DNA of 63,545 bases, the filler included, from Octopus bimaculoides (Eukaryota), in assembly GCF_001194135.2 (NCBI RefSeq). It is 6 parts of 6 records of this genome, joined end to end, with 100 filler letters (N's around TTAATTAATTAA, not from the genome) between each part and the next. Parts side by side here need not be neighbours in the genome. Positions count along the whole stretch, not along the records: positions 41,647 to 56,774 come from NC_068985.1; 5 more parts are not named here. One strand, given 5' to 3'. Below are positions 9,457 through 56,774 of this stretch, one piece after another; position 1 is the first letter of the stretch; the number at the start of each line of letters is the position of its first letter. The notes under the pieces were generated by a model. The model was not told the DNA's origin, ran no database searches, and saw nothing but the letters and a program-made list of their open reading frames with translations. The position numbers and the translations under genes were made by a program.

Positions 9457-10574
9457 GTTTATTCATTTATTTATTTTGTCTTTGGTTTATAATTGTTATT
9501 TTCCATTCGCTTTTATCTAGAATTCAAAGGAAATTACTATAATTCCTTTCAAACTTTGCTTTTGCGACCTGGACATCAATGTTTTCGCACTGATCTATTT
9601 TTATTACATTTCAGACAGGTTCAGTGCTTCGTCGCTGAAATAGAAACATCTTTATAGCAAATATTCTGCTCAGTCGTTTGACCTTAACGACTTGCCAATA
9701 TGTGCATGTCTGATGATGAGCAGGCGTAGTAGGGATGGGCATCATAGCCATATGTTCTGAGGGATTATTTGGGGTTTGAATAAATGTAACAAAAGCAAAA
9801 TTTGAAGCAACTATTAGCCATTTTTCATACTTTATAAGGGTAAGCGAAGAGGAAATAATCATTTTCCAAGAACAAACATCGTGTTATATTGTATAATAAT
9901 TGGTGCCCATGGTTCAGTTAGTAAATACCTAATCTAAAATCTGAACAAGTTTCAGTTTTCAGAAAAAGAAATCAAATAACCCACTCGGACATTGTAGATA
10001 AACTCTGTAAGCAGAACATTATAAATGGCTAAGATGTTTTTAAAGTTCAAAACGTGACATTGTTTTTGATATCTACATTCCAACGATGGAGCTTTGTATA
10101 TTTGTTAGAATCCAGCACCTTCTTTTATTTGAAGGAAGACTTCAAATATTTTAAAACAGAACAGAGCAATCATATATCCATATACAAGCATGTACAGATT
10201 CGTTAATATATTTAGAGCTTGAAGGACTCATAGCAAAATAAGAAATAATTTTTCCTAATTGGGCTTGTTTACCTATTCTATAGCATAACATCACTGAATC
10301 TATCGCCTTCAGAAATCTAAGGCATTTTGGAGTTTCTCTGTAAAACAAGTAAGGGAGCTCCAACGAACATCTGAGCATGACTTGCTAGAAGTAGCAGTCA
10401 AATAACTATTTCAAACTGATATCACAGATAAGGAGTGGACCTCCTTAAATACTGTATTCATAGATACGACTCTGTATATGTGTGAGTTTCTGTATGATTG
10501 TCTACATATATCCATATTCATACACACACACCGCACACACACACACACGCACACAAACACGCGCGCGCGCATGT

Positions 10575-41860: not shown

Positions 41861-43309
41861 TAGTAGATAGATTATTCATGACGCAAGTGCGCACCAAAGT
41901 CTGATTATTCATTTAGACGCGTTCGAATAGCGGCCATTCGGTTTTTAAAAGAATTCCACTTGTGTAATCATCTGTCCTTTCGAAAACGTAGTCGTCTCGT
42001 TCCTTTTAGGTCGAAACTTTCCTTGTTGCACCGTACATTTTTAATGACATTTGATAGGTCATATTTTATACTTGATTAAAGCAGGGTGGAGAATGAACAA
42101 TAAGTGACAAATTCGCGTGTGTTTATGTATTACTGTTGCCCAATATGCTAGAAACAACAGTTACATTCCTCGTTAGTCCTTAAATTTCGTTTGTTAAAAA
42201 TTCATAGATGTTCACGTCGGCAATGCCTTTGAGAGCTGACCCGGGACTCATCAACAATTACAACTAGCGATATGCTGGATGGTTAATTTTGGAACGCCTT
42301 TATGAAGATAGGATAGTTACCGTTACAGGGCATTTAAAAGAGGGGGAATACTTGCTTGGAAAGCTTTGTAAAGACGGAATGCCTTCAAAAAGACCTGTTT
42401 TAATTATCTGTGCACACATCGATCGATGTAGTTGTTTAAACGCAAGCGAAAGTTAGATTAGTTATTTTCGGTTATGAAAGATTTCAGTTTCTGAGACTTA
42501 AACTTCTGCTACTAACGAAAATATGCCCTTCTTATTTAGGTATAAAGTGTCAACTTTTGGTGTAGGAAACAGTAAATTTCTCGACACCTTCGGAAGGATA
42601 AAACAGTGAAATTGAGGTACATAGATTTGAACTCAGAACGTAACGAACTGGAATAAAGCAAAATATAATAATCCGACACACTACCGATTGTGCTAATGCC
42701 CCTCCCTAAACAAATGTATTATCAAATTACATTGCTAAGAACCCATATAAAGGCATATCCTTAACATCCTTCAGTAATTCGTTCAACTAAAATAAAAAAA
42801 TAAAAGACGTAACATGGAGGCAATATTTCAAACAGAGTTGTTAATATATAATTGTTTTAATAAATGATTTCTACATATTTTTACACATTTTTTATTTATA
42901 TATTTCCACTTCAGTATTGGCTTCCAGGGGTTTTTTCCCTTTTAAATCTATGCTTCTTAAGCATAGACTGACCGTCGTAACGTTGGATAAATCGAATGAA
43001 GTTGACGTTTAATGTTTTGTTTTTTTTCANNNNNNNNNNATACATACATACATACATACACGCACACACATAAATTACAGAAAAGCAAAAGACGAACACA
43101 GGTGTATAAACAACAAACAGGTGTATTAGTTTAACGCTCGCGAATGTGACAGTCTTTTACGTTTCGAGCCTACGCTCTTCAACAGAAAGGAACACGAGGG
43201 AATAAACAAAATAATCAAAATATCTCTAAACCAAACTGAACATAAGAATATATATATATAAATCCAATGAACTACACATTCTAAATACATACGTATAGAA
43301 TTATGATAC

Positions 43310-43590: not shown

Positions 43591-44450
43591 TCATGACCAC
43601 AGTTGAATCATTTAAAGAGATACAAGATAAATAATCTAAATAGATAAACATAATAATTTATATCCATAGACATATTAAATAACTCGATAGACGGAATTCT
43701 ACTTTACGCATCCCACATAACCCNNNNNNNNNNNNNNNNNNNNNNNNNNNNNNNNNNNNNNNNNNNNNNNNNNNNNNNNNNNNNNNNNNNNNNNNNNNNN
43801 NNNNNNNNNNNNNNNNNNNNNNNNNNNNNNNNNNNNNNNNNNNNNNNNNNNNNNNNNNNNNNNNNNNNNNNNNNNNNNNNNNNNNNNNNNNNNNNNNNNN
43901 NNNNNNNNNNNNNNNNNNNNNNNNNNNNNNNNNNNNNNNNNNNNNNNNNNNNNNNNNNNNNNNNNNNNNNNNNNNNNNNNNNNNNNNNNNNNNNNNNNNN
44001 NNNNNNNNNNNNNNNNNNNNNNNNNNNNNNNNNNNNNNNNNNNNNNNNNNNNNNNNNNNNNNNNNNNNNNNNNNNNNNNNNNNNNNNNNNNNNNNNNNNN
44101 NNNNNNNNNNNNNNNNNNNNNNNNNNNNNNNNNNNNNNNNNNNNNNNNNNNNNNNNNNNNNNNNNNNNNNNNNNNNNNNNNNNNNNNNNNNNNNNNNNNN
44201 NNNNNNNNNNNNNNNNNNNNNNNNNNNNNNNNNNNNNNNNNNNNNNNNNNNNNNNNNNNNNNNNNNNNNNNNNNNNNNNNNNNNNNNNNNNNTATAAATA
44301 TATAGATATATGCATATATCGTACATATATGGACATACGTACATCTATATATATATATATATATATATATACTTGTGTGTAGAATACAAATTCGTAAAAT
44401 GTTTTGAAAATTCTAAAAAATAAAGTTATAAAGGGTTATATGTCGATTAT

Positions 44451-44497
<47 letters not shown>

Positions 44498-44724
44498 CCA
44501 TGTTGGAGTTCTGTTTTCTTGGTTGCATCACCAAAGCTATATATGTATATATATAAACACGATATCTAGATAGAGAGAGAAAGCCGTAAAGGCTATAGCT
44601 TAGAAGAAAGACTACTAACAATTATTGCAGTAGTCAACTGAGAAGCTACACGACAGCTGATATAGTGTTCGGTAAATACATTCCGTGCAGTAAGAATAAA
44701 AGAATAAGAGTTTATAAGCGGTTA

Positions 44725-44795
44725 TGACGTGGAGGATGTGACCTCCGTTGGGTCATTGAAGCCGTGCCGGAAGTGCACAGTCCCCATCTCTTTCT
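44725..44795 (+). promoter_or_regulatory. Ribosomal-protein-type core promoter: CRE-like TGACGT (44725), ETS site CCGGAAGTG (44767-44775), TCT initiator (44787-44795)
   Basis: TCTTTCT at 44789-44795 matches the TCT consensus YC+1TYTYY; no TATA box seen. The combination is typical of metazoan RP genes. Confidence 0.7.
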
Positions 44796-44811
44796 CGTTT
44801 TTCAACCTGAG
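44788..44811 (+). other. UBA52: Probable non-coding exon 1 (5'TOP leader) of the UBL-eL40 gene
   Basis: Pyrimidine tract ctctttctcgtttttcaacctgag followed by a strong donor G|gtaagt at 44812. Joining to the acceptor at 48327 is inferred. Confidence 0.65.
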
Positions 44812-47234
44812 GTAAGTCACCATTTTATTTTACGTCGTGTATTTTTTGGACATTTATTCCTTATTTATGCGTCTTTAAACATTAAAATGTAATTTTATTT
44901 AACCATAACCTTTGCTAAATACCTCTTACCTGTTTATATTGTACATACATCAGTGTGTAAGTCTTTTTTTGTGTATAATTGTGTCGTTGTACTTTGCCGT
45001 GCTTCTACCACGTGTAGACTCTCAGTCTCTTAATATGTCGTTGAACCATTTTATTATTTGTAAAACTATTTAAAAATGCTAGCATTAATTGGTAGTAATC
45101 TTTTTACTAAGCTGCTGTCTTTTCCTCTCTATTCAGCTAGATAGATAGTGTGTTGTATTTATATACATGCATATACTAGTTTTTGTGATACGATCAGGAA
45201 AATAGAACTCTAATATGTATGTTCATATATATCATCTCTCTCTCATATATATATATATACATACACACGTATATATATATATATATATACATACACNNNN
45301 NNNNNNTATATATATATATATACATACACACGTATATATATATATATATATATATATACATACACACGTATATATATATATACACACACGTATATATACG
45401 CGCACACACATATTTATGATTATCGGCAGAAGTCCAAGAGTGACTCAAGGGCAGAGAATTTCGTGTATTGGTGCTTGTCGAGATATCTATTATGTATATG
45501 GATTTAAATTAAGCTTCAATTAATTTTGAAAATATTAGAGAATGTAGTAAGATAGACTTGTCATTATTTAAGCTGCTAATGGAGAGTAAATTGACGTATT
45601 GTGCTGTGTCGCTACAACTTAGATCTCTCCAAGATATGAAGTTTGTATTGCAGGAGCAAGGACTATTTTAGACGGTTTGGTATTAAAAATGTTAAATATG
45701 AATGTCATTTGTTGTTTGCAAAACTTATAGGGATATGTTAAACGTTTACAATAACGACCTGTGTTGAATACACCTTAAGTTCATATGTTCTGTTTATTCG
45801 GTACCGGATGGGTATTCTTTCGTGCTATTTCTAAGAATACCGTTTATTAGCCCTTTTATACTCCGTAAGAGCTCTGATCTCCGAACTCTGGGCGTGTACA
45901 TCCTTGGTGCTGAAATAATTTATTGATGATCGAAGGTATATTTGAATGGATAAAGAAATAAAATGCCAAGCCTTAATACTGTTTTAAACAATTGGATGTT
46001 GGTTGGTTATAAGTAACTTAGTCTGTAGGTCAAGGTCGTTTATAATTAGTATATATCGTTTTTCTCCTATATTACGTTTCCCATTTATATTCTATATAGG
46101 TGGTAGATGGGACGTGGATATTAAATTTTTTACTTTCGTAGTCATGTGCGCTAATTTAAGAGATAGCATATAGGAAGCCGGTGTCATTGATAACCATTTT
46201 CCTCGTACAAAAATGTCCGGACAGCTCGCAGAATAGGACAAAATGCTAAGCATTTTTGCTGATCAACTTTGCCTTTCTTGTGACATTTAACCGACTTTCC
46301 CCTTCCCCTGAAAAATTGCTGGCCTTGTGCACAATTCTATACAATGCAGTGATTTGTTTTTACTCTCTGCTATGAGTTGAAGAACAATTTACCATTTTTG
46401 TGTAAATCACGTGTCTGAAACAGCTAGATTCGTGGGGTAGGGATGTAATTTCGAATTTTTGTAGGTTTAAGGGGATAAGAAAATCTTTTACTATTATATA
46501 AGTGATGTGAAATATTTAGGGGTTCAAAGTCTAGTGAGAGATTGGATTCAACTTTCAAATGTTGCCAGAAAGGTGTTTTATTCTTGGATCAATTCAAACA
46601 ATTATACATTTGAACCTAGTTCTGTATATCATGCTAAAAGTAGATGTCAGGAATCCTATTCAATAAGTGTTGCATAAAATGTCAATCTTTTCTGGAATGA
46701 TGTTGAAACCCACAAAACATTACTGTTCCCATGCTTCAATAAATTGTAAAAATAATAATAAAGCAATATTTGGTACATAAAAAATTTAACATGAAATTTT
46801 GATGTTTTTAAATTAGTTGATTTAAAACAGGAATTTAGTATCATAGAATCTGGATCATCGCAGGCAGATTGGTGTCAACTGGGTTAACTTTACTCATGGA
46901 ATGTATTATTCTTGTAATGTATGTTGAAGTTAATGGTTATTCTAAGTAACTTTTCCCCATTGCAACATTTGAAATTTGCATTGATCAATTTTGTCCAGTG
47001 TATGTACTTTGAATGAGTTGAAATTTTGATTTAGTATGAAGTGTTGATAAACCTTTAATAGTGAAAAGGAATTAAAAATTAAGCTATGCTTACATAGCTT
47101 ATAATGCTAGAAAAGTTGAATTTCAACATAAGCTCTTTAAAAACAAGACTTTGTATTTTAGTATTTAAAGTATCATGTACACCAACACCAGCATTTCTTG
47201 TCACACTGAGCAAGGTTTCTCTTTGTCCAGTAGT

Positions 47235-47525
47235 CATCATTGTTTAACGTTCGCTTTCCATGCTAGCTTGGGTTGGACAATTTGACTGAGGACGGGTGAA
47301 CCGGATGGCTGCACCAGGCTCCAATTTGGTCTGGCAGAGTTTCTACAGCTGGATGCCCTTCCTAATGCCAACCACTCCGAGAGTGTAGTGTGTGCTTTTA
47401 CGTGTCACCGGCACGAGGGCCAGTCACGCCGTACTGGCAACGGCCACACTCAAAATGGTGTTTTTTGTGTGCCACCTGCACAGGAGCCAGTCCAGCAGCA
47501 CTGGCAATGACCTCGCTTGAATGAT
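47235..47525 (-). mobile_element. R1 LINE 3' UTR/tail in intron 1 (a diverged sense-strand R1 piece lies at about 47600-47955)
   Basis: Matches 22346-22533 plus the ~60-bp UTR units. Confidence 0.75.
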
Positions 47526-48335
47526 TTTTCTGAGGTACATGTAGATAGATAGTAATTGTAGCTGTGAATCAAATTTAATTCTTAGAAGTTAGAAGGGGGG
47601 GGGGACATGTAAAAGGGTAGATCCACGGAGACATAAGATGAAGTGGTGAGAAAAGATCTGATGTTGGGCCTCACAGATGACATAAGGGACTGGTTTGCTG
47701 TGCTGGAGAAGACATACCAAGCTAAATAAAATCACGGCTGTCTATGCATACATCCCTTAGCTGAGAGATCTTTGTCTTGTGTCACGTTAAAGTATCAAGT
47801 ATGCTCTGTAAAGTGGTTGCCATTGGAAAGGGTCATGCAGCTGTAAAAACCATCCCAAAACATACAAATGGAACCCTGGCAACTCCCAAGCTGGTCAACT
47901 ATCAAATCATCCCATCCATCCCAGCATGGTGAGCAGACCTGAGGATGATGATGGTGGGAAGTAAACTAATTGAAAAGTAAAGCTGTGGCTCTTTCTATAG
48001 ATAGGGTCTGACATCTATAGCAAATTGCTCAGTAATGGGAATATATGTATTACATCTGAGATTAAAAATAGAGGTATTAATGCTTAGATGTAAGACTGCT
48101 GGGTAAGTCAGTGGAATATATAATCTGGATTCTCTAATACCTTATGGTGCTAAAAGTTTACAAAAATTCATTTTTCTTCAGATTTTGCTAACTTTGATAA
48201 TCTGGGTTTGGGAATTTGCGTTGCAGATTATGTATGGAGTGGGTCTTCATCACAGTTGATGTGGAGAAGTGTCTGTTTCACTGTATTATGCAGACATAGT
48301 GATAGTGTTGTTGGCTTCTCATTTCAGATACGAAA

Positions 48336-48438
48336 ATGCAACTCTTTGTATCGAATTTGGCCGGGAAGACCCTGGCCCTTGACATGCATTCATCCACCAC
48401 CACAATGGATGTGATGGATTCAATTACAGCCAGGGAAG
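48336..48438 (+). CDS. UBA52: UBL-eL40 coding exon 1 (aa 1-35)
   Basis: Acceptor tttcag|ATAC at 48327/48328, ATG at 48336, donor GAAG|gtaagt at 48438/48439. Confidence 0.95.
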
Positions 48439-51400
48439 GTAAGTATTTTATGCATTTCTCCTCCTCCTTCCATCAAACCTTTTCTGTTCTGGTTTTGATA
48501 GTAATTGAAGGAAATAAAAAGTAGTTATGTTATTGCTTCACGCATAAGAATGTGGTTATGTCGGATTGGCAGTTGTAGAGTGTGAAAGGGATAAATTGTG
48601 ATTAGTGTTAGCAAAATTTGGGTAATTACATGTAGAAACCATCTAGATGAAGAGGAAGGAATGGGTTGAGGGTGCTAACGTCTGGCATGGTAAAATCAGA
48701 ATTTTGTAAGGGAAACAGAAATAGAGTAGCTAAGCATAAGAAAACTACTACAGCAAATATGTATTAAATGTTTTTGGCTTGTGTATATTTATATAAAAAT
48801 TCACTTAATTTTCCATAAAAGCAGAGTTACAGCTATGACACAGTGTGCCTACATTTACTAGTCTGATAGAGTACATTCATGGAGAGTTTTGTCTCATGCT
48901 TTTGTAAAATCCTTTACATCTTAAACTAACCTAGTTTATTTTTCTCAGATGCTCATTATTTGAATTAACTCAAGTCCTTATAGTTGTATAAGTTCTGCTC
49001 TCAGCCATATTGCTATTATTTTGCCTTTATTTTGTAGGTTTATTGGTGATTTTCTGTTTCTTAAATATATAATATCTGTCCACTCTCACAATTTTAAATG
49101 TTACCCAATTTGTTAACATCCTTTGTATAGTTTGTGTTCTGGATTTCCCATTCATACTTCTACGAGCACAACCCAGCGTCTGCTGGTATATAAAAGTACT
49201 CGGCTGTAATGACTACAATACATATTTGCCATGCTCCAACTAGTACGTTTAATAACTTCATTTCTGATGGTTGTTTCGTAACCATATGGTTTTGGTTTCA
49301 GTCCCACTACACAGCACCTTAATTAATCTTTTTGTTGTCAACCTGCCTGAGAACGCATGTTTCAAAGAGCATTTCTACAGAAATGTGGTAGGGAAAGGGT
49401 GAAGTACTTCCTATAGTCCTGGGTCGGATCTGTTCAATTTGGCTCACAGATTTTTTAATTAATTCTTTTTAATACAGTTCTATTTAAGGGATAAGGAATT
49501 ATGTACATTATTTACATTTGACAGATATTTGCCATCTTGTTTGTTGCTGAGGTGTCTTGGGGAAATTTCGAACCTGGGTTCTCATTCCTATGGTATTTTT
49601 CAATGTTATTATTCAAGTCGCTGCCTGGAATTTAACTCGGAATCTTGGGGTTAGTAGCCTGCACTCTTAACCACTATGCCATATGCCCGAAGGCTGGAAG
49701 GTATATCAGCTGAAATGTTACCAAAATGAGGGCAAATATCTGTCAAATGTAAATAATGTAATTCTCACACAGAGCACGGTTTACTTAGAACATTTTTGAC
49801 AAAATTTGGTATTTTAGAAGTTATTTCGTGTAAAGTTGTTGTATTTGGGTAATTTCAGCCAATCAGTGATATGTATTCGGTTGAAGAAGGCTACTGCTGT
49901 TTGCGATAGTAATCGAAAAATAACAACTTCTGGGTCATCTCTTCTAAATGTCACCACTGTTCTATTCGTAAGGCATTTTGAAACTACATATACATGAACG
50001 GCAAAGAAGCTAGCTGGAGACTCATAGCTCTGTAAGTCTTTTAAACACTGGTGCACTTTATGTGCAAATATAACACTGATGTCAGGCAAACAATAAATAT
50101 ATGTAAATAATATTTCTTGCTTCTTGGTGTTGATTCTTCGATGTTTACTGGTTACTCTGACGCGAGAATCAAAAAAATAGGCAACACAAGCAGTAATGAT
50201 TAAAATAGAACAGTGGAGATGACCCGGAAGTTGTTCCTCTTCTGGTACTATCGCAAACAGCAGCAGCTTTCTTCAACCGAATACACATCGTTGATTGGTT
50301 GAAATTATCCAAATACGACAACATAAAATAACTTCTAAAATACCAAATTTTGTTCAAAATAAACTGTGTTCTGTGTGAGACATTCCACCAGTATACGAAG
50401 TTTCAAACTGTTAGTAAAAAGTAATTAACAAATCTGTGGGTTTATGTGGTAAATAGAAACTGTAAAGAAGCCCATTGTATTTATATTACATTGTGTTTCT
50501 GTCTCCTTGTCAAGCGGTCTTGTTTGCAATTTTGATTGGAAATTAGTGAGAGAAAAGGCATTTTTCTGTCTCAACAAATCCTGTCTGAACATTGATATAG
50601 TGACTGATATGGACAATGTAATCTTTAACTTGAAAAGTGCTTGCACCTCGTTAATTGATTTCCAGCATATCATAAGAACCACTCATCCTCTTGTGCTTAT
50701 GTTGGAGTATTGGTAGAGTCCTCTTCTTTTGCCAATTTGTTTCAAAGTTGACGTTGTCATGTCTGTGTTGGTTACATTGATAAGGGTGAATTTGAAACTT
50801 ATTCATGGATTTATGTATGCACGGATTTTTTTAAATATATTTTCTGTTCATAATTGAATCTTAGCTAAGTCATATACAATAAACAGGTTAATGTTTAAAT
50901 TTTTAATTATGCAAATTGTCTTTCAGGAATCCCCCAGAGCCTGCAACGACTTGTGTACTCGGGCAAACAGCTGGACGAAACTGCTAGGCTGAGTGAATAT
51001 GGTGTTGCTACAGGTAAGATCTTTGGCATTTGCATGTTCTTTAGCATTCAAAATGTTTTCGTGTCTTTTGGTGAAAAGTTGTTAGCATAACATTTTTACA
51101 CTGTCTCAGACAGTTGTGTTGTTTTCTTTGCAATGATGTTCCAGGTTTGATCCCACTGCACAGTTCTTTGAATGAGTGGGTGATAGTATGGATCTCTGTT
51201 CATATTCACTTGCGAATCAAATTGATACATTAACAGAATGAAATAAGATTGATTGCTGTCCTGTGACTTTTATACAATATTAGTAATGTAAGCTTTATCT
51301 TGACATACGAAATTACAAACCTGGACTTATTTTTCTGTTGCAAAGCTAGGTGATTTATTCAGTGTCCACTTTTCCCCATTCTAGAATAGTTCATCCATTT

Positions 51401-54222
51401 GTTCCCCTCTTGGGAGTCATCCAGATTTTACCTCTGGTGAGACATTTGTACATGAAATATTTTATGTTTGGTTGTTAGATATTACTTAATTTGTTTCCGA
51501 CTAGGTTACCATCATCAAAGAAACTTACAGATTTTATTGCTTTTGAAAAAAATGGTCAGAAAAGAGTTGTACTATGATATATAGGTTTTATATTAGGGTT
51601 AATGTTCATTAATATGGAATTTGGAATCTTTATAGGTGGCAACAATTTAAAACTATTGTCATTTGTATTAACATGTGACATTTCGGGCAAGTGTTTTCTT
51701 CTGTAGCAAGCCTACAGTTGGATGATGGCTTGTAATAGGAGTTGATTGATGGAAACTACTAGGCTGCATGTCATGTACATATTTATTGTCTGTGTCTAAG
51801 CAAGATATTGAAACTCTCCAGAAAAAGAAATGGTTGATACTGCAGTTTTGACATGTGCAGGCAAGTTGAATGGAAAATAGCCATCAAAACAATTGACAAT
51901 TCATGACAGCGAAGTCATCCAGCTGTTGAAAAGAGTCTTCTATAACCTTTGCCACCATGGAAAACCAAATGACAGAATTGTTAGGGCATTAGGTGTAAGA
52001 GTGATATTTGATCTGGCTGAGATCATCTGAGCTTTTCATCTTTCCATGATTGATAACTTAGAGCACCAGTCAGCACCTGGGTTTCTCTAATTTCTCAACC
52101 TAACCCTAACCCTTCCATACTAGCATGGGTTGGACGATTTGACTGAGGATTGGCGAACCAGATGGCTACACCAGGCTCCAATCTGATTTGCTAGAGTTTC
52201 TACAGCTGGACGCCCTTCCTAATGCCAACCACTCCGAGAGTGTAGTATGTGCTTCCATGTGCCACCTGCACAGAAACCAGTCCAGCGGCACTGGCATCGA
52301 TCTTCCTAGAATGTTTCTCACGTGCTACCGGCACCTATTACATATTTGCTGTAAGAATGTTTATACTTTGCTTGTGAATTATTTCTGAATTAATATTTAT
52401 TTATTCATTGTTGTGTTGCAGGAAGTACTCTCCATTTGCTACTCCGCCTTCCTGGTGGTATCATTGAACCCAGTTTACGTATGCTTGCTTCAAAATACAA
52501 CTGTGAGAAGATGATCTGCCGAAAGTAAGTACAACCTGTTACTGTTTGTTTTTAGATTGGAATTAATTACTGTATTTGCCAGCATATAGGCTGTGCTTTT
52601 GTATTTTTACATGTATAAAAAAAAAATTGCCCTGCATTTAATGTAACTATAAGTAGAGTATTAAAAAGAAGCCAAAATATCCATCTGCTAGCACTAACTT
52701 ACCAATAATTGCTTATGGCATGTTGGCAGTTATATGGAGAGATCATATCTCGTACCTCCTTACCTGGTATACATAATCCACACTTGATATGTTGTACATT
52801 ATTTAGCCCTTTAGCATTTATAGAACATTATATGGTACTTTCTAAAAGGCTGGTTCTGACTGTAAAACAGGCAGAATATTTCAGCCACATGGTCAGTTTA
52901 GATGCTAAAGGATTAATGAGTGCTACCATTAACTTTTTAGCATTTAAATCGTCTATATCCATCCCAAATATTCTGTCTGTTTTGTATTCAAAATGTCATT
53001 CGAAGAATAAACTAGCACTTCAAGATCTTGTAGCTATGATTAATTCAGAATAATGTGAATCAATAACATTACATTTGAAGGTACTCATGAATGCTAAAGA
53101 GTTAAATGGTTTTTGATAATGTAAATGAAATTCTAGAATGATGAGAAGAATGTAATTTTCATCAGTTTCTCAGCTATTTGTAATGCATTAATGACAAAGT
53201 AGTATGGTACACCTCCCTGATGACCTATTGTGGTAACATGAAACATCATAGCCACTATGTATGTTTTACGTACTGTATAACAATTCTCTTGATCAAAGTA
53301 GAAATAATTATGCAGTTGATCTGATGCAGAGAATTGAAATACAGTACTCATGTAATGTAGTTTATGTGATAAATTTACGGTTTCATACTTTGTTCAAATA
53401 TACTGTCACAGCATTGTATTTACATGCACAGAATTACTTTTCCTCGACAAATGTCTTATATGCTAGTATGTTGTCATCATCATTTAAACGTCCGTTGTCC
53501 ATGCTGGCATGGGTTGGATGCTTTGTCTCGGGCTGGAAGGCTGCACCAGACTCCAGTCTGATTGGACATGGTTTCTGTGGCTGGATGCCCTTCTTGATGC
53601 CAACCACTCTGATAGTGTAATGGTTGTTCTTCTCAAGCACAACAATGCCAAAGGTCTTAGTCCTTCGTCATTGCCTCTGTGAGGCCCAATGCTCAAAAGG
53701 GTGCTCTCTACTTGCCATTGGCATGAGTGCCAGTTTACATGGCACCAGCATCAGCTGCGACTATGATTTCACTTGGCTTGATGGGTCCTCTTAATTAGCG
53801 AAAAATGTATTTGTGGTTAGATTCTGAATGACTGACTAAATCCCTGAGCCGGGTTTAATTTTTATCGAGATCCCTGTTTTTCACTTCTATATAAAGATTC
53901 AACTCTAGTAATACTCTTTGTATTACAGTTAAGGAAAATTAATCAAAGATATTGCAGTCTTGATCACTACTGATTGTTTGGACTGCAAAATATATTGTTT
54001 ATTAGAGGGTATGATTTAAGAGATTTGCTTGTTACTTTTAATAATCTGTTACAACAATGTAATACTATTGACTCTTTCTTTCTCACTATGTTCCAGTAAA
54101 TTAATATCTTCTTTTACTGTTCTTTCAGGTGCTATGCTCGCCTTCACCCACGTGCTACCAACTGCCGTAAAAGGAAATGTGGCCATAGTAATAATCTGCG
54201 GCCCAAGAAGAAGCTAAAGTAA
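48336..54222 (+). CDS. UBA52: Ubiquitin-like domain-ribosomal protein eL40 fusion (UBA52/RPL40-like), 128 aa, join(48336-48438,50927-51013,52422-52524,54129-54222)
   Basis: Spliced translation [128 protein letters not shown]. 387 nt, all introns GT-AG, compatible phases 1/1/2. The symbol is assigned from eL40 and gene layout; the N-terminal domain is not canonical ubiquitin. Confidence 0.96.
49505..49759. mobile_element. Intronic element with 29-bp perfect inverted ends, an antisense tRNA-like head and a truncated hammerhead remnant
   Basis: 49505-49533 is the exact reverse complement of 49731-49759. Minus-strand TGGCATAGTGG..GAGTTAAATTCC at about 49615-49687; GA-A-GGCTG..CAGCT-GAAA at 49689-49715. 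Confidence 0.7.
49763..50380. mobile_element. Fold-back/MITE element with ~165-180-bp inverted arms in intron 2
   Basis: 49763-49941 and 50216-50380 are reverse complements at roughly 80-85% identity by eye. No clear TSD. Confidence 0.85.
50927..51013 (+). CDS. UBA52: UBL-eL40 coding exon 2 (aa 35-64)
   Basis: tttcag|GAATCCCC..GCTACAG|gtaag; 87 nt. Confidence 0.95.
52105..52330 (-). mobile_element. R1 LINE tail in intron 3
   Basis: Matches 22346-22533. Confidence 0.75.
52422..52524 (+). CDS. UBA52: UBL-eL40 coding exon 3 (aa 64-98, spans the PGG|IIEP junction)
   Basis: ttgcag|GAAGTACT..CGAAA|gtaagt; 103 nt. Confidence 0.96.
52807..53101. mobile_element. Two M1 piggyBac-type MITEs in opposite orientation (52807-52912 and 52933-53101) in intron 4
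   Basis: Both have CCTTTAGCAT-type TIRs with TTAA-like flanks, and their adjacent ends are mutually complementary. Confidence 0.7.
53470..53790 (-). mobile_element. R1 LINE tail in intron 4
   Basis: catcatcatttaaacgtccgttgtccatgctggcatgggttgg..ctggatgcccttc. Confidence 0.75.
54129..54222 (+). CDS. UBA52: UBL-eL40 coding exon 4 (eL40 C-terminus, stop TAA 54220-54222)
   Basis: tttcag|GTGCTATGCTCGC encodes [30 protein letters not shown]. Confidence 0.97.
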
Positions 54223-54253
54223 ACATTACATATTTTATTGTGATGTTCAATTG

Positions 54254-54259
54254 AATAAA
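54254..54259 (+). terminator. Polyadenylation signal AATAAA
   Basis: Lies 31 nt after the stop and is followed by T/GT-rich sequence, giving the short 3' UTR typical of RP mRNAs. Confidence 0.8.
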
Positions 54260-54484
54260 CGTTTAAGTATCTACTTGGCCTTTGTTTTTCTATTTGTCTA
54301 CTTGAGTTTCGGATTTATTGTTTATTGCAGGACTCTAAGTGTGATAAATGTTTATGTAAATTATGTATTTGAAGATTCTTTCTCAGAGTATTTTAGTCAG
54401 AAGGGAAAACAGGGCTTTGGGACTGGAGGGCATACCATAAATAACTGAATTTCAGAAACTACACGCAAGATAGTTATTTTTTAA

Positions 54485-56425: not shown

Positions 56426-56774
56426 GGCTTTCGTTGACATGGAGAAAGCCTTTGACAGGGTCCCCCGATCCCTTATCTGGTGGTCAATGAGGAAACTTGG
56501 GATAGAAGAATGGTTAGTGAGAGCTGTGCGAGCCATGTACAGAGATGCTGCCAGTAAGGTGAGGGTTGGAAATGAGTACAGCAATGAATTCTGGGTAGAA
56601 GTAGGGGTCCACCAAGGTTCCGTCCTCAGCCCCCTCTTATTTATCATAGTCCTCCAGGCAATCACAGAGGAGTTCAAGACAGGTTGCCCCTGGGAGCTCC
56701 TCTATGCTGATGACCTTGCCCTAATTGCGGAGTCACTCAGAACTAGAGGAGAAGTTTCAGGTGTGGAAGCAAGG
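56426..56774 (+). mobile_element. RTE LINE reverse-transcriptase fragment (little decayed, cut by gap)
   Basis: AFVDMEKAFDRVPR..GVHQGSVLSPLLF..LLYADDLALIA. Confidence 0.92.

Follow-up and report, generated by a model that had tools for sequence, protein, structure and literature searches.

Structure of the UBL-eL40 gene

We analysed 63,545 nucleotides of Octopus bimaculoides DNA, six parts of RefSeq assembly GCF_001194135.2 joined end to end and called here the window, whose positions are used throughout. The part taken from NC_068985.1 (41,647 to 56,774) carries a gene in which the ribosomal protein eL40 is encoded behind a diverged ubiquitin-like domain (UBL) in place of ubiquitin (Ub). Scripted splicing of this gene, hereafter UBL-eL40, gives a coding sequence of 387 nt in four coding exons, bounded by AG acceptors and GT donors throughout, and a protein of 128 aa followed by TAA. 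An intact four-exon reading frame of 128 aa had been proposed from the sequence alone (the original prediction), and splicing over 48336-54222 bears it out. The identities reported with it were also recovered upon recomputation: in ungapped alignment, residues 1-76 match ubiquitin at 37 of 76 positions and residues 77-128 match human eL40 at 45 of 52. The gene is organised as follows.

48336-48438, + strand: first coding exon, 103 nt
48328-48438, + strand: full exon 2, with 8 nt of 5′ untranslated region (UTR), the ATG at 48336, codons 1-34 and base 1 of codon 35
50927-51013, + strand: exon 3, 87 nt, UBL residues 35-64, preceded by a phase 1 intron
52422-52524, + strand: exon 4, 103 nt, UBL residues 64-76 with LRLPGG, the Gly76/Ile77 junction and eL40 residues 1-22
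54129-54222, + strand: exon 5, 94 nt, the remaining eL40 with the zinc-ribbon cysteines, the C-terminal KKKLK and the TAA stop
54254-54259, + strand: AATAAA polyadenylation signal, 32 nt 3′ of the stop codon, read from the sequence

The 8 nt 5′ of the ATG sit directly after a splice acceptor (catttcag/ATACGAAA ATG), with the exon starting at 48328. At the other end of the gene, the block 54122-54265 is 87% identical to Argonauta.

Both halves of the protein are recognised by Pfam. The C-terminal 52-aa eL40 domain, with its four zinc-binding cysteines, matches Ribosomal_L40e (PF01020, E=2e-31) over residues 78-127, covering the full model, and the leader matches the ubiquitin family (PF00240, E=7.5e-18) over residues 3-73. 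The AlphaFold model of the leader is a β-grasp with a predicted local distance difference test (pLDDT) of 82-89; compared with ubiquitin structures, it gives template modelling (TM) scores of 0.92-0.98 and root mean square deviations of 0.6-1.9 Å. Ubiquitin proper is near-invariant: between animals, fungi and plants it differs at no more than 3-4 positions, and it carries seven lysines and an LRLRGG tail. With 37/76 identity, replaced lysines and an LRLPGG tail, the octopus leader is not ubiquitin proper.

The octopus protein is identical to XP_014769892.1 (UniProt A0A0L8IFH5) of O. bimaculoides, which is annotated simply as "ubiquitin-60S ribosomal protein L40". The same sequence forms chain m of PDB entry 9EHO (279.8 bits over 128 residues), deposited as the full 128-aa precursor under the name 'Ubiquitin-ribosomal protein eL40 fusion protein'. 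The entry, a cryo-electron microscopy model of the O. bimaculoides ribosome, accompanies a preprint of June 2026 (10.64898/2026.06.25.734654), whose text mentions neither eL40 nor ubiquitin and no diverged leader. A practical warning follows: the plain L40 annotation, found also in this ribosome structure, hides the divergence of the leader.

Promoter and non-coding first exon

About 3.5 kb 5′ of the ATG, the block 44754-44823 is conserved with Argonauta. Leaving aside matches resembling dispersed repeats, it is the sole Argonauta-conserved block beyond the coding exons and the sequence directly flanking them. The layout of the promoter block is ...TGACGT...GCCGGAAGTG...CCCCATCTCTTTCTCGTTTTTCAACCTGAG/gtaagt, with sites that resemble a cAMP response element (CRE) and an ETS motif, and a start of the terminal oligopyrimidine (TOP) kind.

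44725-44730, + strand: TGACGT motif, CRE/ATF-like, upstream of the non-coding exon
44767-44775, + strand: CCGGAAGTG motif, ETS/GABP-like, upstream of the non-coding exon
44788-44811, + strand: non-coding exon 1, with a pyrimidine-rich TOP-like start CTCTTTCTCGTTTTTCAACCTGAG, a putative 5′ end and the donor gtaagt at 44812

The names CRE/ATF-like and ETS/GABP-like were assigned from general knowledge of ribosomal-protein promoters, and we take both to be putative sites. In animals, ribosomal-protein promoters usually combine an ETS-like site with a pyrimidine-rich start, followed by a short untranslated first exon and its splice donor.

O. sinensis and O. vulgaris share the block at 91% identity, and it is conserved in Argonauta (L003, 7719-7789). 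Sepia pharaonis keeps it in part (L004, 11864-11896, TGCCGGAAATACATAGTCCCCGTCTCTTTCTCG), and there the core GCCGGAA..AGTCCCC.TCTCTTTCTCG is still recognisable. Octopus, Argonauta and Sepia all have the unchanged sequence CTCTTTCTCG within exon 1, and the GT donor is conserved among octopods. By its motifs, the promoter with its first exon is of the typical ribosomal-protein (TOP-type) kind, with a predicted start site.

Distribution in coleoids and descent from Ub-eL40

Relatives were found with a profile of the UBL plus 9 aa, and genes were extracted from genomic loci L001-L004 and L008. A full-length search was crowded by di-ubiquitin-eL40 models, in which a single ortholog cluster (P0019) was distinct. 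The diverged leader is present in two further octopuses, O. vulgaris and O. sinensis, with 3 amino acids changed relative to O. bimaculoides, in Argonauta hians (10 differences) and in the cuttlefish Acanthosepion (Sepia) pharaonis (21 differences). Further examples came from two Sepia-like Logan transcript contigs and from a decapodiform in ENA assembly ERZ21867824. All five extracted genes have four coding exons, with intron positions and phases as in O. bimaculoides, and the GG/IIEPSL junction is conserved in 6 of 6 coleoid sequences.

The same architecture is found in bivalves, where the ubiquitin half is canonical. Three bivalve Ub-eL40 loci (L009-L011), which encode a protein indistinguishable from that of Crassostrea, have the exon lengths of the coleoid gene, 103/87/103/94, and intron phases 1, 1, 2 are shared by these loci, octopus, Argonauta and Sepia. 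The coleoid eL40 tail is likewise of molluscan type. Because the bivalve exon lengths are identical, the coleoid gene is an in-place descendant of an ordinary Ub-eL40 gene and not a new fusion; the descent from a UBA52-type gene that the original prediction had drawn from exon lengths, compared there with vertebrate UBA52, is upheld by the bivalve lengths, the phases and the molluscan tail. Gene structure and sequence together identify UBL-eL40 as the coleoid ortholog of the Ub-eL40 (UBA52/RPL40) gene, and probably a housekeeping ribosomal-protein gene. No neighbouring gene was called within 8-10 kb at any examined locus, in octopus relatives or bivalves. The diverged leader is ancient and goes back at least to the coleoid crown group.

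Divergence and selection of the leader

The two halves of the protein have evolved very differently. Among six coleoid sequences, the eL40 half shows a single amino-acid replacement, in cephX; the other five do not differ there. For this half the ratio of non-synonymous to synonymous substitution rates (dN/dS) is 0-0.03 across coleoids, with synonymous sites saturated. For the UBL, dN/dS is 0.09 between Octopus and Argonauta (dS 0.78), 0.17 between Sepia and the other decapodiform (dS 0.50) and 0.11-0.18 between octopods and decapodiforms. Fisher tests of the UBL against neutrality gave p=5e-11 (Octopus-Argonauta) and p=2e-6 (Sepia-other decapodiform). Non-synonymous change is also significantly higher in the UBL than in the eL40 half (p=0.002, 0.017 and 4e-9). 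Such low values, which are nevertheless above those of the eL40 half, argue that the leader is functional but released from the constraint on ubiquitin. In bivalve Ub halves, by comparison, there are 0 non-synonymous changes and 76/76 residues are those of ubiquitin. The proposal that the ubiquitin half escaped its usual constraint, with a dN/dS below 1 but above that of ubiquitin, agrees with these figures (0.09-0.18 versus 0). The substitution pattern places the leader under moderate purifying selection.

With ubiquitin taken as the ancestor, 28 of the 76 positions are changed in every coleoid, and 18 of these 28 carry a common derived residue: I3L, T7N, I13L, K27M, A28D, K29S, D32A, K33R, P38Q, Q40L, I44V, E51D, D52E, N60G, K63T, E64G, V70L and R74P. 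These 18 shared residues imply that much of the change in the leader is older than the octopus-cuttlefish split. Conversely, every coleoid retains the ubiquitin residue at 31 positions, among them Q2, F4, L8, I36, Q41, R42, L43, G47, K48, Q49, H68, L71, R72, L73, G75 and G76; overall, coleoid leaders are identical to ubiquitin at 37-41 of 76 positions.

What was kept and what was lost is not evenly spread. The hydrophobic core, the Ile36 patch, the Ile44 patch (with conservative V44 and L70) and the C-terminal tail bar Arg74 are retained. The ubiquitin helix face is lost. In the octopus leader K6, K27, K29, K33 and K63 are replaced, and decapodiforms lose K11 as well, so six of the seven ubiquitin lysines are lost in at least one coleoid lineage and Lys48 alone is invariant. 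Arg54 is lost and, in the tail LRLPGG, Arg74 has become Pro in all coleoids. Gly75-Gly76 is invariant and stands directly before eL40, where it would be exposed after cleavage.

Three other identities were considered and rejected. A pseudogene or drifting copy is ruled out by the dN/dS values and by promoter conservation. A relationship to FUBI or NEDD8 was considered owing to the MQLFV start and the YSGKQ motif. The leader has 26-28/76 identities to NEDD8, versus 37-41 to ubiquitin, and keeps Arg72 rather than having Ala72; with FUBI it shares 21-24/76, its partner is eL40 and its gene structure is that of Ub-eL40.

Expression and number of eL40 genes

Splicing evidence comes from decapodiform relatives. 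The Logan contig L005 (SRR29271476) carries a complete uninterrupted reading frame from which the three coding introns have been removed. Because the intron upstream of the ATG exon is still present in it, this contig derives from RNA and not from a retrocopy. A second transcript contig, L006, which is partly chimeric, joins the first three coding exons. A third line is L007 (ENA ERZ21867824, ctg65875l), where positions 9824-10119 correspond to the decapodiform UBL-eL40 mRNA over the first three coding exons and lack introns. Truncated, ending in a (TA)n tract and differing from its parent gene L008 at 17 of 291 nucleotides and 8 amino acids, this stretch is a decaying retrocopy. Its existence shows that spliced UBL-eL40 mRNA was present in the germ line.

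Exact look-ups of five guessed forms of canonical ubiquitin joined to a coleoid-type eL40 tail found none of them in a collection of 15 billion proteins, where Argonauta, Sepia pharaonis and three Octopus species are represented by their annotated proteomes. A paralog differing by one residue would escape this test. The absence of these canonical forms, together with eL40 conservation, the housekeeping promoter and the orthologous structure, weakly favours UBL-eL40 as the sole coleoid eL40 gene.

Canonical ubiquitin itself is made in octopuses from elsewhere, as the original prediction had supposed. The PMC7693380 supplement lists the peptides ESTLHLVLR, IQDKEGIPPDQQR and TLSDYNIQK as detected in O. 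vulgaris, along with an annotated Ub-S27a protein of O. bimaculoides, XP_014787008.1.

Repeats and other elements around the gene

A dispersed repeat of about 100-190 nt is present in three copies that are 77-89% identical (47256-47442, 52113-52299 and 53535-53631). The first copy precedes the ATG exon, and the other two fall within introns of the gene. The repeat, which has counterparts at the Argonauta locus, is probably an octopod short interspersed nuclear element (SINE). The first coding intron contains a foldback of about 570 bp, whose arms of about 150 nt (49792-49941 and 50216-50360) are 86-90% complementary, and a second inverted repeat, a 41-nt hairpin pair (49504-49544 and 49720-49760). 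Both look like remnants of miniature inverted-repeat transposable elements (MITEs) or foldback transposons. About 2 kb downstream of the gene, a reading frame at 56439-56774 (+ strand) with a reverse-transcriptase domain (Pfam RVT_1, E=4e-12, YADD motif), cut by the edge of the piece, is a retrotransposon fragment.

Assembly gaps (runs of N) are found at 43030-43039, 43724-44292 and 45297-45306. Long TA/CA microsatellites (43724-44510 and 45215-45430) border gaps on both sides of the promoter, and they yield spurious sub-threshold Rfam matches to mir-297, mir-466 and similar families. Introns of ribosomal-protein genes commonly carry small nucleolar RNAs (snoRNAs). Rfam identified no snoRNA in the UBL-eL40 introns; its matches were sub-threshold microRNA families alone, from these microsatellites.

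A probable cleavable leader for eL40

We think it fairly probable that the UBL serves as a cleavable, cis-acting leader for eL40, as FUBI does for eS30. On the coleoid stem, the branch of octopuses, squids and cuttlefish, the ubiquitin-coding half would have been released from the constraint to remain ubiquitin and would have fixed at least 18-28 amino-acid changes, after which a distinct UBL leader would have been maintained under moderate purifying selection. UBL-eL40 would be translated as a precursor in which the β-grasp leader aids, in cis, the expression, folding and solubility of eL40, a small, basic, zinc-binding protein. A deubiquitinase-type protease would cut after Gly75-Gly76, and eL40 alone would join the 60S subunit. 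Selection would thereby keep the core, the protease-gripped Ile44 and Ile36 patches, Arg42/Arg72, Leu71/Leu73 and Gly-Gly, and would leave the helix face and six of the seven chain-forming lysines free to vary. Free ubiquitin would be supplied by the polyubiquitin and Ub-eS31 genes, and the released UBL is probably not a major conjugated modifier. Of these elements, the cleavage step, the chaperoning in cis and what becomes of the released UBL are our inference; the structure and orthology of the gene, its conservation and selection, the fold as predicted and the splicing seen in relatives are results of the analysis. In yeast, the ubiquitin moiety of the eL40 fusion is a cis chaperone needed for productive expression, for which SUMO can partly substitute (PMC6721733), and ubiquitin left on eL40 blocks 60S maturation, according to work cited in PMC6721733 and PMC8354635.

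Several points weigh against a cleavable leader. Pro74, at the P3 position, is an uncommon residue there and might delay processing or send it elsewhere. A leader that has only to fold and be cut might drift more than a dN/dS of about 0.1-0.18 indicates. The invariant Lys48, Arg42, Arg72 and Ile44-patch residues may equally fit recognition by E1, E2 and receptors. Finally, a second canonical coleoid Ub-eL40 is excluded just weakly by the exact look-ups of five guessed sequences.

The last of these points bears on the idea that a canonical Ub-eL40 elsewhere supplies most eL40 and that the present copy is a duplicate peculiar to the lineage, relaxed or specialised in its role, for example for tissue-specific ribosomes. 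The first name given to the protein by NCBI, 'L40-like', fits such a paralog. However, the eL40 half hardly varies among coleoids despite saturation at synonymous sites, octopus and cuttlefish share the housekeeping-type promoter with its first exon, and the exon structure is that of the single bivalve gene. The canonical forms looked for are absent from the protein collection, and the modellers of the 9EHO ribosome took this very entry as eL40. We regard a redundant paralog as improbable. More doubtful still, and to our mind very improbable, is a UBL that stays on eL40 and on the ribosome because Arg74-to-Pro blocks processing. The unusual Pro at P3, shared by dermatophyte UBL-eL40 proteins, speaks for it, and an uncleaved Ub-like eS31 of Giardia, in work cited in PMC8122580, offers a precedent. 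Yet Leu71-Arg72-Leu73 and Gly75-Gly76/Ile77 are strictly conserved, the hallmark of a maintained cleavage site, and FUBI is cleaved with Leu, not Arg, at the equivalent position. The block of yeast 60S maturation by retained ubiquitin, in the work cited above, also argues against it.

The remaining explanation takes up the fit of the invariant residues to the ubiquitin machinery. The released UBL, produced one-for-one with ribosomes, would be a new ubiquitin-like modifier or an editor of ubiquitin chains, attached to proteins and perhaps activated by UBA1, given the retained Arg42, Arg72, Leu8, residue 44 and Gly-Gly. Since Lys48 is the sole conserved lysine, such a modifier could extend Lys48-type chains alone or cap other linkages. 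Gly75-Gly76, Arg72, Arg42, Leu8, His68, Lys48, Gln49 and Leu71/73, all invariant in coleoids, are the E1 (UBA1) contact residues apart from Arg74 (PMC12355090), a dN/dS of 0.09-0.18 is real constraint, and conjugation has been proposed for FUBI too (PMC8354635). Against this, Arg74, which contacts the UBA1 crossover loop, is Pro in every coleoid, Arg54 is lost, and variation of Ser65 and Lys6/Lys11 between lineages suggests no fixed signalling code. The conserved surfaces are also those that a processing protease requires, and so do not discriminate a modifier from a cleaved leader. We hold a modifier to be possible though rather unlikely. One particular form of it, less likely again and offered as a speculation, is a lineage-specific modifier or chain terminator, stoichiometric with ribosomes and partly read by the ubiquitin machinery, that would couple ribosome output to proteostasis. 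Retention of the Ile44 patch, Arg42, Arg72, Lys48 and Gly-Gly would account for the partial reading, and Pro74 with the loss of six lysines for insulation from the remaining ubiquitin machinery. Coleoids have unusual ribosomes and heavy RNA recoding.

Significance of the diverged leader

The ubiquitin half of Ub-eL40 is usually regarded as practically invariant and as one of the main sources from which the cell draws free ubiquitin. Coleoids, a whole major animal clade, have kept a half-diverged version since their common ancestor, and it is still under selection. This amounts to a natural experiment that could separate the features of ubiquitin required for the mere production of eL40 (the fold, the protease-gripping patches and Gly-Gly) from those required for signalling (the lysines, the helix face and Arg74). 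It also offers a second animal system, independent of FUBI-eS30, for UBL leaders of ribosomal proteins and their proteases. The prediction is that coleoid ubiquitin comes from polyubiquitin and Ub-eS31 alone.

Comparison with known UBL and ubiquitin fusions of ribosomal proteins

As in canonical Ub-eL40 (UBA52, yeast UBI1/UBI2, C. elegans ubq-2 and the bivalve gene), the coleoid protein has a 76-aa β-grasp ending in Gly-Gly and fused directly to a 52-aa eL40. Exon lengths and phases are those of bivalves, the eL40 tail is nearly identical and the promoter is of ribosomal-protein type. Unlike the canonical leader, that of coleoids matches ubiquitin at 37-41 of 76 positions, and six of seven lysines and Arg74 are not conserved.

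Diverged leaders on other ribosomal proteins had been named in the original prediction for FUBI-eS30 and for C. elegans ubl-1/eS31, and both precedents are found in the literature (PMC8354635, PMC6721733). The leader of FUBI-eS30 (FAU) is 36% identical to ubiquitin, with Gly-Gly and a single lysine; the human protein is cut by USP36, and this cleavage is needed for 40S maturation (PMC8354635). The coleoid protein resembles it as a diverged leader on a small ribosomal protein that keeps Gly-Gly, has mostly lost its lysines and no longer has Arg at ubiquitin position 74, where FUBI has Leu. FUBI-eS30, a fusion of holozoans, differs in its partner (eS30, of the 40S subunit) and in being far older and more diverged. 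Sequence comparison indicates that the coleoid UBL arose separately, from ubiquitin itself, and is unrelated to FUBI. With UBL-1 of C. elegans and C. briggsae it has in common the lineage-specific decay of a ribosomal-fusion ubiquitin into a UBL, and nematode UBL-1 has been cited in support of a chaperone role of the leader (PMC6721733; PMC10556562). UBL-1, however, is an eS31/S27a fusion, whereas the coleoid case concerns the usually conserved eL40 fusion and a whole major animal clade. According to Catic and Ploegh, as cited in PMC6332867, the ubiquitin of S27a fusions is more variable and L40 fusions are conserved.

A parallel in architecture lies in dermatophyte fungi (P0246, P0247 and P0250; Microsporum canis XP_002847964.1, Trichophyton interdigitale and T. 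benhamiae). Their UBL-eL40 proteins have the same 128-aa architecture and the same Arg74-to-Pro replacement, with a leader that matches ubiquitin at 42/76 positions and whose last residues are LVLDLPGG. They differ by Arg72 to Asp, and are known here from database entries alone; our literature search found no paper describing them, so they are apparently undescribed. Their origin is independent, because the related Coccidioides has a canonical Ub-eL40. Two more diverged eL40 fusions appeared in the profile search, P0252 (JGI, 126 aa), whose leader ends in LRLLGG, and P0255 (Logan, 112 aa), which keeps LRLRGG. Literature searches turned up no account of a diverged leader on eL40 in cephalopods, nor any of the LRLPGG tail. 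The original prediction is to be softened in that such fusions also arose independently in dermatophytes and are found in P0252 and P0255. Taken over coleoids, dermatophytes, P0252 and FUBI (with Leu), loss of Arg74 recurs in ribosomal UBL leaders. As a hypothesis, this recurrent loss may be a common first step, one that takes the product of the leader out of the ubiquitin pool.

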